Below are positions 14,374-47,805 of a DNA stretch of 64,000 nt, piece after piece. Position numbers and translations under genes: made by a program. Positions within the stretch are counted from its first letter, which is position 1; each line of letters opens with the position of its first letter. The DNA lies in sequence record NC_070999.1; one strand, 5' to 3'. The notes below the pieces were generated by a model. It worked only from the letters and a program-made list of their open reading frames with translations, did not search any database and was not told where the DNA came from.

Positions 14374-14808
14374 ATGTCTAAAGCAAACGCATTCGCTAAA
14401 TCCATGGATTCTTCTATCGCTGAACTGGTTAAGAATGCAACCATTCACAAAGACACTCATCACGTAGCTTTTGCTACACCTACTCTTCCTAAAGGTATCA
14501 CTGCTGAATCGTTGACTCTGCATAACGATTTCGTTAATCAGGTATCTGTAGCAGCTGAAGCAGCTCTGAGCGAAATTGCTATTGCTCAGTATCCTGATAC
14601 CAAGGTCACTGATTGGGATGCTGAACTGAGTCTGATTCCTGGAATCGACATCACCGCAACTGCAATGTTGAAAACTACAGTTGGTGAAGAGACCATGTAC
14701 GGTGTTACTGATCTGTGTGTGGATCACATGTTCAATGAAGAACTTTCTACCTGGTATGACGAGTTCCAAGGTGTCAACCAGGAACGTGTTAAGAAACTGT
14801 TTGATTAA
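14374..14808 (+). CDS. hypothetical protein, likely highly expressed
   Basis: 144-aa ORF with AAGGA SD; strong optimal-codon bias (GCT, CTG, ACT). Confidence 0.75.
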   Translation: MSKANAFAKSMDSSIAELVKNATIHKDTHHVAFATPTLPKGITAESLTLHNDFVNQVSVAAEAALSEIAIAQYPDTKVTDWDAELSLIPGIDITATAMLKTTVGEETMYGVTDLCVDHMFNEELSTWYDEFQGVNQERVKKLFD

Positions 14809-39747: not shown

Positions 39748-39762
39748 AATAACCCTCCTATA

Positions 39763-39791
39763 TTTTTTCAGATAGATATTATTTAAGTGTT
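39763..39791 (+). promoter_or_regulatory. putative early promoter for the HNH gene
   Basis: TTTTTTCAGATAGATATTATTTAAGTGTT. Confidence 0.7.
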
Positions 39792-39808
39792 ACAATTGGA
39801 GAAATATA

Positions 39809-40861
39809 ATGAAAAATAGTTATCAAAATCTTGACTTTTATTTACTAACCGACATCCTGGAACTTAAATATGACGAGTCTAGTTCATATGATGAACGTGT
39901 TCAAAAGCGTTACAATTACGTTAAAGAGCAATTGGAACTAGATCCTAACTATGAAGGTTGGGACTATCCGGAATACTATAAATTTAAATACACTGGGGAA
40001 ATAATATATTTAAATTCATTTAACTATATAGTTTCTACGAATGGGAAATTTGCTGTATTGGACGACGATGGTACAAGATTTTCTTTATGTAATGGTTCTC
40101 GTAGCGGACCGTACAGAGAAATCAGCATCAGGGATCTGGAAAACAAAAGAATACACATGAACGTCCATAGAGTACTTGCTTGTACATTCATAATGGACGA
40201 ATACAAGGTTGGGGTTTGGAAGCTGTTCTGCAATCACAAGGATCTTAACAAACATAATGACACATTCATTAATTTAGAGTGGACAACACCAAGGGATAAC
40301 ATAATTCACGCATGGGTTAACGACGCGCATAAAACTCCCAGAACTTATCATGGAGGTAACGTTTTTATAGGTAAATATATTCTAGATGATGAGTATGAAG
40401 GTAAAACTTTTTCTATAGATGGTTCCAAGGGACTAATGGATGTTGGGTTAAACCACACTTTTGTAATTTCCAGTATATTAGGTAACTCCAAATGTTGCTA
40501 CGGGTTCATTTGGTCATTTGGCGTGCCTGAAGATTTGAACGTTTATCCTTCTATACCAATAACGTTAGCTAGTAGGGTTGCAACTGATGTAACTTACACA
40601 TTAGAAAGACTGATACCTATATTGGGAAAGATAATTGAAACCGGTGAAACATTTGTTTTGTATGGAAGAACTGAAATTTCTGACAATGGATTTAGCCAAT
40701 CTCCAAGCAAAGTTTTTGAATATTCAAAAACGGGTAAACCTTATAAAGGTTGTATTTTCAAAAGAGTGTCTAGGTTAGAAGGAAATAAACACCAAAGAGG
40801 CCTCACTAGAAAACAAATGGAATACTTAGGATTAAAATCTAAATATAAACAAAACAAATAA
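39809..40861 (+). CDS. free-standing HNH homing endonuclease (I-HmuI/NUMOD4-like)
   Basis: VHRVLACTF...CNHKDLNKHND...NLEWTT..DN motif; C-terminal repeated DNA-binding-type modules. Confidence 0.85.
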   Translation: MKNSYQNLDFYLLTDILELKYDESSSYDERVQKRYNYVKEQLELDPNYEGWDYPEYYKFKYTGEIIYLNSFNYIVSTNGKFAVLDDDGTRFSLCNGSRSGPYREISIRDLENKRIHMNVHRVLACTFIMDEYKVGVWKLFCNHKDLNKHNDTFINLEWTTPRDNIIHAWVNDAHKTPRTYHGGNVFIGKYILDDEYEGKTFSIDGSKGLMDVGLNHTFVISSILGNSKCCYGFIWSFGVPEDLNVYPSIPITLASRVATDVTYTLERLIPILGKIIETGETFVLYGRTEISDNGFSQSPSKVFEYSKTGKPYKGCIFKRVSRLEGNKHQRGLTRKQMEYLGLKSKYKQNK

Positions 40862-40898
40862 CTTAACCTTCACTCTCCAATGGAGAGTGAAGGTTAAG
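40862..40898. terminator. bidirectional terminator between the HNH gene and the RNA island
   Basis: 18-bp arms: CTTAACCTTCACTCTCCA-A-TGGAGAGTGAAGGTTAAG. Confidence 0.85.
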
Positions 40899-40924
40899 AA
40901 TATCGTTATTTTATTTCAATACAC

Positions 40925-41720
40925 ATTCCATAAGGTTATCAATCTTCCACACCGAGTGCTTCGGCAAATGGTATTCAAGATAACCCTACAGGTCGTGCAT
41001 TTACTACACCACTTCTACCCGACGAAAGGTAGCATACAGTTTGCTCTGTTAGCTCTAGTCGTCTAGTAAAAGATCTAGTCTTTATACTCTAGGTCACTAA
41101 CGTCTGCGCTGTCTAAAACACCGACCATACCCGCAGGTACGGAGTGTCGGAACTCACTGTTAGGGCGTTCCTAAATAGCGAACAAGTCAGATCTAAATTG
41201 ACCTGAGTCGTTCTGGACATCTTTGTTTCATGTCGCGGTCTTACTTCGACTATAACTTTCAGACTTATATGCTGACTAAACAGCTTTACGTTTCGTCTGA
41301 AAGGTAACACCTCTTTGTTTTGCGTCCTGAGGTTTCTATTTGGGACGATCCCGCCACGTAGGGATTGGACGTCTCTTAACTGTTTGAATGCACCGTTAGG
41401 ATAAAGGAGACATGCTGACCGAGCATTATGACAACGGGAAACAATTAAGAGACTACTGGGACGATCACTACTTTTGAATTAACAGACATTGGGTAAGTGA
41501 GGACTTTTGCAATTGGTTCTGCGAATTTCTAAGTAGTGATCGAAAGGTTGAACTATCAGTCGCCCGCTTCACTTAACGCAGATGGTTAATTAGAAACCTG
41601 ATAGTTCGTAAAGGGTTAGTTATCCATGAGAGTTTTAACTTTTCCGTTAGGCTTTGAGTTTCAACAATTTGTGATAGAGCATGAAGCAACGGGAGGTCTA
41701 AAATCAAACATAAATAACTA
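40925..41720 (-). ncRNA. candidate large (~800 nt) structured non-coding RNA
   Basis: No credible ORF; many long complementary pairs (41371-85/41439-53, 41462-73/41531-42, 41550-59/41598-607, 41330-38/41591-99, 41256-64/41295-303); plus-strand A-C mismatches become G-U on the minus strand. Confidence 0.65.
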
Positions 41721-41725
41721 GAAAG

Positions 41726-41809
41726 TGGTCTCCGAGGACGGGATCGAACCGTCACGCCATAAGCGAGGGATTTTAAATCCCTTGTGTCTACCGATTTCAC
41801 CACTCGGAG
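41726..41809 (-). tRNA. tRNA-Leu(TAA)
   Basis: Cloverleaf with long variable arm; anticodon loop TTTAAAA; GTTCGAT T-loop; encoded CCA. Confidence 0.93.
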
Positions 41810-41814
41810 GATAA

Positions 41815-41889
41815 TAAGGATTATTGGATTCGAACCAATTCAATCTCTCTAATGGTGAGAGCGAGTTACCACCTAACTCTGCAATCCTT
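41815..41889 (-). tRNA. non-canonical tRNA-like gene (CAT anticodon, atypical loop, no CCA)
   Basis: Perfect stems AAGGATT/AATCCTT, GAGTT/AACTC, CTCTC/GAGAG and ATTGG/CCAAT with TTCGAAT T-loop; anticodon loop ACCATTA. Confidence 0.6.
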
Positions 41890-41896
41890 AAAGGGG

Positions 41897-42030
41897 TTAG
41901 ATCTTTCTCTTTGTCGTCATGAAAACCAGCAGGTCTCATATTGTTTATTTGTCTCGGTCACTTCAATTCGAGTCGAAGTGTAATTTGTCGGACAAATGTT
42001 AGATGGACAAGTTTCTTGAGAAAGATCTAA
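41897..42030 (-). ncRNA. candidate ~134-nt structured RNA domain between tRNAs
   Basis: Closed by a perfect 13-bp helix TTAGATCTTTCTC/GAGAAAGATCTAA, with internal hairpins. Confidence 0.45.
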
Positions 42031-42032
42031 AC

Positions 42033-42108
42033 TGGCGGTTCCTGCTGGGATTGAACCAGCGACATACGGATTAACAGTCCGCTGTTCTACCTACTGAACT
42101 AAGGAACC
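42033..42108 (-). tRNA. tRNA-Asn(GTT)
   Basis: 76-nt cloverleaf; anticodon loop CTGTTAA; CCA end. Confidence 0.95.
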
Positions 42109-42114
42109 TGAAAA

Positions 42115-42191
42115 TGGTGAACCCGGCACGGCTTGAACGTGCGACCAATCGATTATGAGTCAACTGCTCTAACCAACTGAGCTACGGGTCC
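42115..42191 (-). tRNA. tRNA with CAT anticodon, Ile2-type (lysidine)
   Basis: 77 nt; GACTCATAATC anticodon arm and A discriminator resemble enterobacterial ileX; CCA end. Confidence 0.85.
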
Positions 42192-42197
42192 ATTAAC

Positions 42198-42274
42198 TGG
42201 CGGGTCCGGCGTGACTTGAACACGCGACCAATGGCTTAGAAGGCCATTGCTCTATCCAACTGAGCTACGAACCC
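42198..42274 (-). tRNA. tRNA-Arg(TCT)
   Basis: 77 nt; anticodon loop CTTCTAA; CCA end. Confidence 0.95.
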
Positions 42275-42280
42275 TGGAAA

Positions 42281-42480
42281 GGTGGGTAGGAAATATCCTA
42301 CCCGACATGTATTACTTCGTTCTATCCCCAAGGTGCGCAAATGTCCGACCCGGTTTAGGGTTGAAATTATCAAGTGGTAGATTCGGAAGTAATAATGTTC
42401 TTTGAAATAGGGGCGAGATGCTAGACCGGGGTTTATACCGGCATCTCCTGGTGGTAAGTTCACCAAGCGACTTCTGTTCA
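42281..42480 (-). ncRNA. candidate ~200-nt structured RNA or tRNA-operon leader
   Basis: Hairpins GGGTAGGA/TCCTACCC and GAGATGC/GCATCTC; long-range ATTACTTC/GAAGTAAT pair. Confidence 0.45.
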
Positions 42481-42564
42481 GTCTACTAACATCTCTAAGT
42501 CGAGTAACTAGATTAACTATTTACGTCTACTATACTTCAACATAATATAAACATTATGCTTATT

Positions 42565-43168
42565 AAATAAAAATACTCCTAGTTAGTTGGAGTAACTAGG
42601 AGTAAAACAAAAACGCATGGAAGCATTTTTGAACGGCTCATTACTTTTTAATTAACTCTTAGTAAAAACTAATTAAAAAGTAGGTGTCGACTTAACACCT
42701 ACAAAAATCAAATCTACAGGAAATAGAACAAAACAATGAAAAAGAAAACGCAAACCAACGCACGAAGAACCCCGAGTTCTTCCTTAAGAACACTTTGGTA
42801 AATATCCTTAAGGAAGAGAAGATGTAGGGATCATCTTCTCTGGGGTAACAAGCACCTAAACGTACATGAAAGCAAGGGAATACTTTCTTAATAGTAACTC
42901 TTTAGAATTAACATTAAGAAAGTCACAGATATCTAGGAGGAGGAGAATACCTGTGACCTTTTATTACGGAGGATTTGAAATGCAAGAAGTCAACTGTTAG
43001 CGGCAGCCTGAACTTCTTTAAGTTCACTTAATTGGAATAAACTTAAAGAAATAAGGTAACAAATAATATAATCTATTACCTTAAACCAAAACGGTATAAA
43101 CCTACATAAAGAGGATCCGATCATGAAAAACTTCCACTGACAACAGGTTGAGGTTTTTCTTTCACATA
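42565..43168 (-). ncRNA. candidate hairpin-punctuated antisense RNA array (~600 nt) with five anti-SD/anti-AUG linkers
   Basis: About 12 hairpins whose plus-strand A-C mismatches are G-U pairs on the minus strand; each long linker is complementary to SD...ATG; ends in a hairpin plus U-tract. Confidence 0.65.
42574..42604 (-). terminator. intrinsic terminator ending the hairpin array
   Basis: 12-bp stem TACTCCTAGTTA/TAACTAGGAGTA, followed on the minus strand by TTTTTATTT. Confidence 0.75.
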
Positions 43169-43210
43169 TAATAAATACATCGTTGTAAATAAATAAAAAT
43201 ATTTAAGTCC

Positions 43211-43240
43211 CATAATTTTTCAGATAGATATTATTTTATT
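43211..43240 (+). promoter_or_regulatory. putative early promoter
   Basis: CATAATTTTTCAGATAGATATTATT. Confidence 0.72.
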
Positions 43241-43290
43241 GATAAACCAGTGAGGTTTATTTTTAACCTTGAGTGTAGAGAGGGTAGTTT

Positions 43291-43704
43291 ATGAGACTAT
43301 TTGGTTGTGAAGAAAAAGTAAGTGGGAGAGATCGACAAGTTTTTGTGTTTAAGGATTTTGTTATTAAACTTCCTAGAACTGAAAGTTGGTTATCGTTCGT
43401 AAGGGGTCTGTGTTCCAACTTAAAGGAAATCGAAACAGCAAAGTCTTATAGTGGATTATTTCCTGAGCAAGTTATGGAAATCAAGTGGTCTGGTTTATTT
43501 GGAATAATCTTGGTAGCTAAACGTTATCAAGAAGTGAAAGACACGACTGTACATCGCCGCAGATTTTTTTATCACTTAAGGAGACTTCATGGGAAGGATC
43601 TTTACAAGTGGAACTTTATCTGGGAAGATGATGTTAAAGTTTTCAACTACGGCTGGGATGAATACGGTCGGTTAGTGAAACTGGATTTAGGCATAAATTA
43701 TTAA
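43291..43704 (+). CDS. minimal protein-kinase-like protein
   Basis: SGRDRQVF loop, VIK lysine, alphaC Glu (NLKE), DVKVFN catalytic loop and LDLG (DFG-like), all in 137 aa. Confidence 0.6.
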   Translation: MRLFGCEEKVSGRDRQVFVFKDFVIKLPRTESWLSFVRGLCSNLKEIETAKSYSGLFPEQVMEIKWSGLFGIILVAKRYQEVKDTTVHRRRFFYHLRRLHGKDLYKWNFIWEDDVKVFNYGWDEYGRLVKLDLGINY

Positions 43705-47353: not shown

Positions 47354-47357
47354 ACTT

Positions 47358-47387
47358 GTTTAGGGAGTTAGTTTTAACTCCCTAAAC
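47358..47387 (+). terminator. intrinsic terminator
   Basis: GTTTAGGGAGTTA-GTTT-TAACTCCCTAAAC. Confidence 0.8.
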
Positions 47388-47389
47388 TT

Positions 47390-47800
47390 TAATTTTACAT
47401 TTATATTTTTATGTAAAAAATATATGTTATGTAATTGGTTACTAAATTTGATTTTTGAACTTTACTTTTTCTTGGTTTTCCTATTCCTTTTAGATCGAAT
47501 TTATTTCGATTTATAGGGGGTTTGGGGGTCCAGGTCAAAGTGGGGTCCAAAGGTCAAGTGCGGGTCCAATTACCTAGTTCGGGTGAGTGGGCGGCTGGAA
47601 GCCTATTATACTTAATTAGTGAAATGAGTATGATGGTAAGATAAGAATGAACGTAGTGAATACCTTATCCATCAATACGAATGAACTGTAACTAGGTAAG
47701 AAGAAAAGTAATACATTTTAAAGATACTACAAACAACTTACTCTGGGTGAATAACCTAGGGTAAGGGAATATGTTTGTTCATTTAAATAAATTACTAAAG
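47390..47800. other. non-coding region with T-rich flank, G-run/GGGTCCA repeats and A-rich flank (origin- or pac-like candidate)
   Basis: GGGGGTTTGGGGGTCCAGGTCAAAGTGGGGTCCAAAGGTCAAGTGCGGGTCCAA at 47516-47569. Confidence 0.4.
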
Positions 47801-47805
47801 AGGAT

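Follow-up and report, generated by a model that had tools for sequence, protein, structure and literature searches.

Stable RNAs C and D of phage T4 (species 1 and 2) lie beside phage tRNA genes, are about 120-140 nucleotides (nt) long, come from a tRNA precursor and are of unknown function. The function of ROOL and GOLLD RNAs, which are encoded by phages and prophages near tRNA islands, is likewise unknown. In the phiKZ-like phage 201phi2-1, RNAs derived from 5' untranslated regions (UTRs) and delimited by terminators have been reported; among such RNAs of phiKZ-like phages, one immediately precedes a tRNA, and for one there is conservation across genera. On this subject a 2026 review states only that non-coding RNAs, of unknown role, are expressed by phiKZ. 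Here we describe an RNA of pAEv1810, an Aeromonas phage of the genus Ferozepurvirus with a genome of 235 kb (NC_070999). It is an OBP-like jumbo phage of the nucleus-forming kind, and genes for a nuclear shell protein and a phage RNA polymerase are present in its genome. The stretch that was analysed, hereafter the window, covers the initial 64 kb, and window and genome coordinates coincide. The minus strand of positions 43165-42566 very probably encodes a single non-coding, structured RNA, either a gene of its own or a leader, about 600 nt in length, which belongs to a previously undescribed family of OBP-like nucleus-forming jumbo phages.

This RNA resembles ROOL and GOLLD in being phage-encoded, in exceeding 500 nt (0.5-0.9 kb among relatives), in having a structure supported by covariation and in adjoining a tRNA island. 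However, it matches neither Rfam model, and it consists of tandem paralogous hairpins, whereas ROOL and GOLLD adopt pseudoknotted, multi-junction folds. The family comes from lytic jumbo phages of Gammaproteobacteria. As with the 5' UTR-derived small RNAs (sRNAs) of 201phi2-1 and phiKZ, a transcription start (here a TATG box) and then a terminator (here a terminator-like hairpin) are located upstream of a gene or tRNA. Those sRNAs are single-domain and shorter than 250 nt, whereas four repeated modules are predicted for the window RNA. T4 RNAs C and D are also phage non-coding RNAs by tRNA genes, but by their description are set apart as unrepeated. Searches of Rfam with cmscan returned only tRNAs, for the window at the gathering score, for 40800-43400 at E<=10 and for the loci of phages OBP, N1M2, SXP01 and pEt-SU at E<=1. 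We found no description of this RNA in the literature.

The original prediction for this region was an array of independent guide-like sRNAs, each antisense to one translation-initiation region. It is instead one homologous RNA gene, which aligns end to end across 13 phages with four orthologous hairpin positions, and not a set of separate sRNAs. The phages carrying it infect seven genera (Aeromonas, Pseudomonas, Klebsiella, Serratia, Erwinia, Edwardsiella and Shewanella). From the 5' end, the aligned RNA comprises a start box, (T)TATRTGTRA, that is kept in all 13 phages; the repeat hairpin R0; GCCAUCGUGCUU; and UGCCAUUGUUCAU followed by a CU-rich stretch. Its middle part holds a GGGAAG..CUUCCC hairpin fused to R1 and then, fused to R2, a hairpin whose loop is CUUUUCCU. 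The 3' part consists of a CCAUAUGUUUGUUUU hairpin, the last R hairpin, and a GC-rich hairpin with a U-run that closes the RNA in at least 8 of the 13 phages. The RNA is unannotated in the records examined. Those of OBP and AH04 carry a small coding-sequence call on the opposite strand, namely OBP_015 (L009 3836-3967) and AH04_23 (L015 3024-3194), and both calls, which lie antisense inside the conserved RNA, are probably spurious.

The region had also been described as free of repeats, with unrelated sequences between its units. This was mistaken, as four of its hairpins (R-a to R-d; Table 1) are paralogues of one 18-bp motif, R, and correspond to R0, R1, R2 and the last R of the family. They are spaced 105-137 nt apart within a single 410-nt stretch, and R-a aligns with R0 of the 12 other phages. 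A variable hairpin (V) stands directly 5' of each R hairpin, so the RNA is assembled from two-hairpin V-R modules with pyrimidine-rich single strands between them. The R consensus is YUUUCUUWAW..UAUUY-loop-RAGUG..WUWAAGAARG, in which the conserved elements are the stem-base sequence UUCUU/AAGAA and two U.G wobbles close to the apex; clearer copies are found in OBP. Because four to six R hairpins keep their sequence besides their pairing, they resemble repeated recognition sites for one protein.

Covariation strongly supports the R hairpin. Among 8 copies, 94.4% of alignment cells are paired and compensatory change occurs at 12 of 18 pairs, a result equalled by none of 500 shuffles, while slid controls reached 44-54%. 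When 32 copies from 13 phages were aligned, 95.3% of cells were paired and 13 of 18 pairs were compensatory, with 119 doubly changed cells (0 of 500 shuffles; slid controls 47-56%). A covariance model of R (R1 model in Table 1) scores 34-58 bits on the sense strand and 16-32 bits on the antisense strand across the family, and 44.6-49.9 bits on the minus strand of the window versus 22.7-29.4 on its plus strand. With this model, 3-6 copies per phage were detected on the tRNA strand of the syntenic gap in 12 other phages or contigs (OBP, N1M2, D6, SXP01, AhC3_1, Yubaba, AH04, pEt-SU, CF8 and three uncultured contigs), and no further copy was found in the remaining 231 kb of the pAEv1810 genome.

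Outside the family the motif is rare. Applied to unrelated viral DNA (719 kb) and to bacterial DNA (415 kb), both chosen to contain the stem pattern, the model produced one and two isolated matches, respectively. A loose palindromic pattern of the stem base returned only chance matches in IMG/VR, and the matched contigs were reused as a specificity control for the model. A stricter pattern gave 54 single matches, in AT-rich taxa, among 185,579 bacterial and archaeal genomes, with no arrays and none in the host genera. A lone hairpin in the Zetaproteobacteria metagenome-assembled contig CANFEH010000046 (L180 3239-3286) scores 45.6 bits with the R model and is not part of an array; it is probably a chance AT-rich palindrome. 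Two known kinds of repeat were considered and rejected. CRISPR arrays, and RNA anti-CRISPRs with solitary repeat units, have near-identical direct repeats of 28-37 nt and unique spacers of similar length, whereas R copies are 40-50 nt long and share only a common structure and about 20 conserved positions. Dispersed intergenic repeats, such as elements resembling repetitive extragenic palindromes or the PeSL cassettes of T4-type phages, are ruled out by the occurrence of all R copies at a single locus.

The minus strand had been proposed as the folded RNA, and this choice is borne out. Over 42565-43168, the minimum free energy (MFE) is -182.3 kcal/mol on the minus strand (z -15.3) and -136.7 kcal/mol on the plus strand (z -6.1). 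Local folding of the minus strand recovered all eleven hairpins listed in the original prediction, at the positions given there and with the G-U pairs it had counted (three in 42814-42781, three in 42679-42645 and two in 43083-43052). The proposed bounds, a TATG at 43168-43165 and a terminator with a U-tract at 42604-42574, are both present, and the region has three terminator-like hairpins with U-tracts on this strand. Across four Ferozepurviruses, the 1-kb non-coding block is 93-96% identical and so better conserved than the flanking genes (83-96% and 87-91%). Pairing in its well-formed hairpins survives 23 changes, of which 20 are one-sided (mostly through G-U) and 3 compensatory, and is broken by 6. 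Relatives keep the hairpins while much linker sequence varies, as had been anticipated. No open reading frame (ORF) is conserved on either strand: the plus-strand ATG at 42866 is missing in phages AVP1 and ACP1, and PS1 has a 7-nt deletion and frameshifting indels. The better fold of the minus strand, the pairing-preserving changes and the unconserved micro-ORFs together indicate that a minus-strand structured RNA is under selection.

The presumed start of the RNA includes TATG, which corresponds to the core of the phiKZ late promoter, T(-3)ATG(+1). In pAEv1810, the genes for the major head protein and the tail fibre are likewise preceded by a TATG after a T-rich stretch. Late expression of the RNA is weakly suggested by this match of four bases. 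A sigma-70 promoter scan detected nothing above chance in the RNA region, and the T4-late motif TATAAATA is not enriched. The start box P1 has a 34-nt near-repeat at 42542-42575, within a second box, P2, that stands ahead of a structured leader and the tRNAs; as a general promoter, TTATATTATGT of this box is not enriched (37 matches versus 49 expected). An exact DNA pattern made from the terminator found no match in IMG/VR.

Table 1. Predicted features of the window RNA and of its immediate surroundings
Feature	Positions	Strand	Basis and remarks
Promoter-like box P1, presumed RNA start	43165..43201	-	AT-rich segment, then TTATTATATGT; TATG at 43168-43165
5' hairpin GAAAAAC...GUUUUUC	43125..43159	-	Local MFE; outer stem retained in PS1, inner part replaced
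Variable hairpin V-a, 13 bp	43052..43083	-	Local folding; in relatives, 6 one-sided changes pair via G-U, 2 break
Repeat hairpin R-a, orthologue of R0	43012..43052	-	R1 model 48.7 bits minus, 26.5 plus; alignment columns 164-214
Hairpin, 13 pairs	42984..43018	-	Local folding; in competition with R-a for 5 nt at the R-a base
Linker GCAUUUCAAAUCCUCCGUAAUAA with CAU-7 nt-CCUCC	42961..42983	-	Sole linker with anti-Shine-Dalgarno and anti-AUG segments retained across genera
Variable hairpin V-b, 15 bp, loop UCUCCUCCUCCUAG	42919..42960	-	2 compensatory changes, 5 one-sided changes kept, 3 broken
Repeat hairpin R-b, orthologue of R1	42883..42922	-	R1 model 49.3 bits minus, 29.4 plus; alignment columns 351-396
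Variable hairpin V-c, 10 bp	42815..42841	-	Local folding
Repeat hairpin R-c, orthologue of R2	42778..42817	-	R1 model 49.9 bits minus, 24.0 plus; alignment columns 686-723
Long U-rich linker (unit B of the original prediction)	42703..42764	-	Core AUUGUUUUGUUCU aligns with conserved (C)UAUGUUUGUUUU
Variable hairpin V-d, 9 bp, then U5 (terminator-like)	42680..42702	-	Local folding
Repeat hairpin R-d, orthologue of last R	42643..42681	-	R1 model 44.6 bits minus, 22.7 plus; alignment columns 935-973
Hairpin, then U4 (terminator-like)	42608..42631	-	Terminator-like by its hairpin and U-tract
Terminator, 12-bp hairpin then UUUUUAUUU, presumed RNA 3' end	42566..42604	-	Invariant in four Ferozepurviruses
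Second promoter-like box P2, TTATATTATGT (context)	42539..42575	-	TATG at 42544-42541; partial duplicate of the start box, past the terminator
tRNA-Arg, Met, Asn, Leu (context)	41726..42274	-	The genome's only tRNAs; downstream of the RNA, same strand
Divergent early-type promoter of gp035 (context)	43209..43233	+	CCCATAATTTTTCAGATAGATATTA

The RNA region sits within a 2.4-kb gene-free stretch (40862-43290), in which the four tRNA genes also lie and all of which is unannotated in the pAEv1810 record. The DUF7484 virion protein encoded just downstream has 64-74% identity to the versions of Pseudomonas phage OBP and other OBP-like jumbo phages. In 9 of the 13 phages, the first ORF past the terminal hairpin is Tad2-like and starts 15-25 nt beyond it; four of these ORFs were assigned by Pfam PF11195 (E 1e-13 to 1e-17) and five by obvious similarity to those four. 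Behind it follow a small conserved ORF, tRNAs, glutaredoxin, and DUF7484 and other virion genes. A tblastn search of 40862-43290 in pAEv1810 detected no Tad2-like gene, decayed copies included. The DUF7484 and virion genes lie beyond at least four terminator-like hairpins, and have neither an early-type promoter motif on their own strand nor an obvious upstream TATG box. With no room for, or sign of, promoters of their own, the genes downstream would depend on read-through of the terminator of the RNA.

The favoured explanation of this arrangement, as a whole, is a structured RNA family that acts as a read-through leader, which we propose tentatively. The layout of a promoter, modules, one to three terminators and then genes without their own promoter (Tad2-like in the 9 phages, tRNAs, and DUF7484 and virion genes) matches that of a leader for processive antitermination or attenuation. 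The nascent RNA, alone or bound by a factor, would let the phage RNA polymerase pass terminators into the long minus-strand operon, and terminated transcripts would build up as a stable 0.6-kb RNA. The V-R modules would be repeated binding sites for one putative protein. This particular mechanism, read-through included, is more doubtful than the explanation as a whole; in it the anti-Shine-Dalgarno-like CU tracts would be a secondary feature. The terminator-delimited 5' UTR RNAs of 201phi2-1 provide a precedent for a leader.

The putL and putR RNAs of phage HK022 and the EAR element of Bacillus occupy, at the sequence level, a similar position, with a promoter just before them and terminators and a long operon after them. 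A put RNA has two paired stem-loops and can be likened to one V-R module. No sequence similarity to either was found, EAR, if Rfam includes it, gave no match in the Rfam scans of the window and four relatives, and put and EAR act on host RNA polymerase, whereas the polymerase for the window RNA would be the phage multisubunit enzyme.

Several points weigh against a leader. Known antiterminator RNAs are far shorter (about 70 nt for HK022 put and about 120 nt for EAR) and are not repeated four- to six-fold. The R motif occurs at a single locus though the genome has many operons, and the protein partner of the R hairpins is only putative. The start, end and timing of the RNA, and read-through itself, are deduced from sequence features. 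In pAEv1810, the P2 box past the terminator means that the tRNAs may not depend on read-through, and the RNA is retained despite the absence of the Tad2-like gene. The P2 box and the keeping of the RNA without this gene fit a trans-acting role at least equally well.

A stable RNA with four to six hairpin copies might thus titrate or assemble a host or phage protein as a sponge, decoy or scaffold, and its place beside Tad2-like and tRNA genes could make it part of counter-defence or host take-over. The sequence-conserved hairpins, at 3-6 per phage, the discrete unit from promoter to terminator, and the persistence of the RNA in pAEv1810 are all compatible with this idea. However, it draws on guilt by association and a putative partner, and leaves unexplained why the RNA is constantly placed immediately downstream of the promoter of a long operon; we regard it as rather unlikely. 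A self-assembling, ornate RNA like ROOL or GOLLD, which would form an RNA-only multimer, is improbable. Its size, extensive conserved structure and location adjoining phage tRNAs would suit such a role, and the common stem-base sequence of the R hairpins would permit the exchange of arms between copies. Yet Rfam yielded no match, even at the permissive E values used for the window and the four relatives, and the RNA is a string of simple hairpins in which no pseudoknots or multi-way junctions were detected. Some trans-acting function of a large modular RNA, either as a multivalent decoy in the Tad2-tRNA counter-defence neighbourhood or by self-assembly of the ROOL and GOLLD type, is together possible but doubtful. 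A decoy would, for example, soak up a host RNA-binding or RNA-cleaving factor, with the wobble-marked repeat hairpins as its functional sites. The RNA could also be a precursor cut at the R hairpins, whose long, nearly perfect stems, stacked on V hairpins, would be substrates for a double-stranded RNA nuclease and give stable pieces of about 105-140 nt. The regular spacing (about 110-180 nt in relatives) would fit, but the conserved stem base and apex are unlike RNase III sites, which are not known for sequence conservation at these places, and a precursor is very unlikely. A DNA-level element where the promoters diverge (a replication origin, iterons, or a packaging or cruciform site) is extremely unlikely. 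Inverted repeats do recur periodically in the AT-rich region between divergent genes, and their outer half-sites (CTTTCTTWA / TWAAGAAAG) are conserved. However, the inner stems show covariation rather than conservation, the conserved U.G wobbles (24 and 16 of the 32 copies have UG) would turn into A.C mismatches on the opposite strand, the R model scores roughly double on one strand, which is also that of the U-tract terminator, and the GC skew has no origin-like turn here. It is hardly credible that the Shine-Dalgarno (SD) and ATG pairs of the plus strand are true starts of tiny peptides. Two canonical pairs exist, at 42980 and 43123, and the pair at the orthologous linker is conserved in 7 phages, but the peptides are conserved neither in length nor in sequence (6 amino acids in the window and 7 to more than 37 elsewhere), one ATG and the reading frame are lost among Ferozepurviruses as described above, no plus-strand promoter motif occurs between 39781 and 43209, and a plus-strand transcript would be antisense to the tRNAs.

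Exposed CU-rich anti-SD segments, in part with anti-AUG, could pair between scaffold hairpins with initiation regions of host or phage, which is the regulatory role originally proposed. The single strands are indeed pyrimidine-rich and anti-SD-like (46% U and 23% C at unpaired positions of the window RNA), and the anti-SD loop UCCUCCUCCU is present on the minus strand. Over the 13 RNAs, which are not independent samples for this enrichment, there are 11 occurrences of CAU-N4-9-anti-SD where dinucleotide shuffling predicts 2.9+-1.6 (0 of 300 shuffles), and two on the antisense strand; 51 anti-SD 5-mers compare with 29+-6.7 expected; and unpaired UCC occurs 71 times on the sense strand versus 11 for unpaired GGA. 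The CAU-bearing motif is present in 7 of the 13 phages. Orthologues of the CAU..CUCCU/CCUCC of linker 42961-42983 are found in N1M2, SXP01, pEt-SU, CF8, AhC3_1 and D6, and not in OBP, Yubaba, AH04 or the loci L006-L008. About 9 phages conserve a CUUUUCCU(C) loop that is not in the window, and SXP01 and AhC3_1 have ACCUCCUUA. The CCU loop of V-b is specific to Ferozepurviruses, the GGGAAG..CUUCCC hairpin standing at its place in other phages. The conserved (C)UAUGUUUGUUUU, with which the core of linker 42703-42764 aligns, is part of a hairpin in other phages, supplying its loop and 5' arm. Linker 2 and the V-b loop favour initiation regions (-8.6 and -7.9 kcal/mol) over sites inside genes (-6.3 and -4.7 kcal/mol).

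However, of the five plus-strand SD..ATG pairs that linkers were proposed to occlude, workable spacing holds for two (GGAGG-6 nt-ATG 42980 and GAGGA-7 nt-ATG 43123), the remaining three being spaced by 14, 14 and 20 nt. In RNAduplex pairings with the 62 initiation regions in the window, no linker does better than shuffled ones (fractions 0.08-0.99), an outcome that the original prediction had itself named as contrary to it, and which concerns phage targets within the window. The gene at 14374, put forward as a target of unit B, pairs no better than expected by chance (-18.7 kcal/mol, rank 10 of 62; best -25.2). Moreover, a generic anti-SD would also strike the strong SDs of the phage itself, the motif is missing in 6 of the 13 phages, and conservation is highest in the R hairpins rather than the linkers. 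The anti-SD flavour of the RNA is real but generic and only partly conserved, and the guiding of several specific phage targets in the window is unsupported. Antisense guides against five ribosome-binding sites are only weakly supported, and an antisense regulator of translation initiation is distinctly unlikely. In exposing CCUCC or CUCCU in loops and linkers, sometimes with CAU at start-codon distance, the RNA resembles C-rich anti-SD sRNAs such as staphylococcal RsaE and RNAIII, which have UCCC loops, and the streptococcal csRNAs, which combine anti-SD with anti-AUG, but these RNAs are 90-500 nt long and have defined targets. CsrB and CsrC, and RsmX, RsmY and RsmZ, likewise carry many copies of a short element on hairpins of a terminator-ended RNA. 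A sponge of their type was rejected, because their defining GGA loop motif falls on the wrong, antisense strand, the transcribed strands of the 13 RNAs having only the 11 unpaired GGA counted above.

Other features of the surroundings were noted. The 265-nt leader between P2 and tRNA-Arg (42275-42540, minus strand) hardly varies among four Ferozepurviruses and is structured (z -4.4 to -4.8), with a CCGG to CUAG compensation in one hairpin of ACP1. The ORF-free stretches flanking tRNA-Leu (40899-41725 and 41810-42032, minus strand) also fold better than shuffles (z -5.4 and -3.9). On the plus strand, 47354-47805 is possibly a second non-coding RNA; this ORF-free 452-nt segment is very strongly structured (MFE -143.9 vs -98.7+-5.9 shuffled; z -7.7), contains repeated GGGGTCCA/GGTCAA motifs, and has no Rfam match at the gathering score. 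The tRNA genes Leu-UAA, Asn-GUU, Met-CAU and Arg-UCU (41726-42274) are absent from the pAEv1810 RefSeq annotation, while relatives annotate theirs.

The 25-nt motif YMYATAATTTTTCARNNNNATATTA, of which the gp035 promoter is a copy, occurs 10 times in the window, always on the plus strand, versus 0.12 expected (starts 11835, 13566, 15789, 16390, 17988, 29167, 39757, 43209, 53200 and 57702). pAEv1810 probably uses it as its early promoter, read by the virion RNA polymerase. Early promoters of phiKZ-like phages are AT-rich and conserved at -10, -20 and -30, and the features of the motif at 43209-43233 fit these. As a query for related loci, gp035 retrieved no relatives. An inserted HNH endonuclease gene (39757-40898), which has an early-type promoter of its own and ends in a 17-bp hairpin, separates the tRNA region from the DUF7484 gene, and minus-strand transcription of the virion genes must traverse it antisense. 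The insertion is confined to pAEv1810; AVP1 and ACP1 lack it, and PS1 has a different endonuclease between its tRNAs. Two annotations deserve attention. N1M2_258 (L010 1929-2168; 79 amino acids), labelled "methionine--tRNA ligase", matches the Tad2-like domain PF11195 (E 2e-17), and the label is likely a misannotation. The product of gp234 (L138 48360-49784; genome 212360-213784; 474 amino acids), labelled "ribonuclease", has no Pfam match at E<=0.01 and could matter if the RNA is processed.

The family itself is new and well supported. The non-coding RNAs of jumbo phages are almost unexplored, and this one, absent from Rfam, has very strong covariation support. It represents a third, architecturally different case of a large structured phage RNA by tRNA islands. 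Since the RNA heads an operon that carries a homologue of a Thoeris anti-defence protein (Tad2-like), all of the phage tRNAs and virion genes, it may bear on how the phage multisubunit RNA polymerase handles terminators, or on RNA-based manipulation of the host. OBP on Pseudomonas fluorescens offers a tractable and non-pathogenic system for this RNA family.

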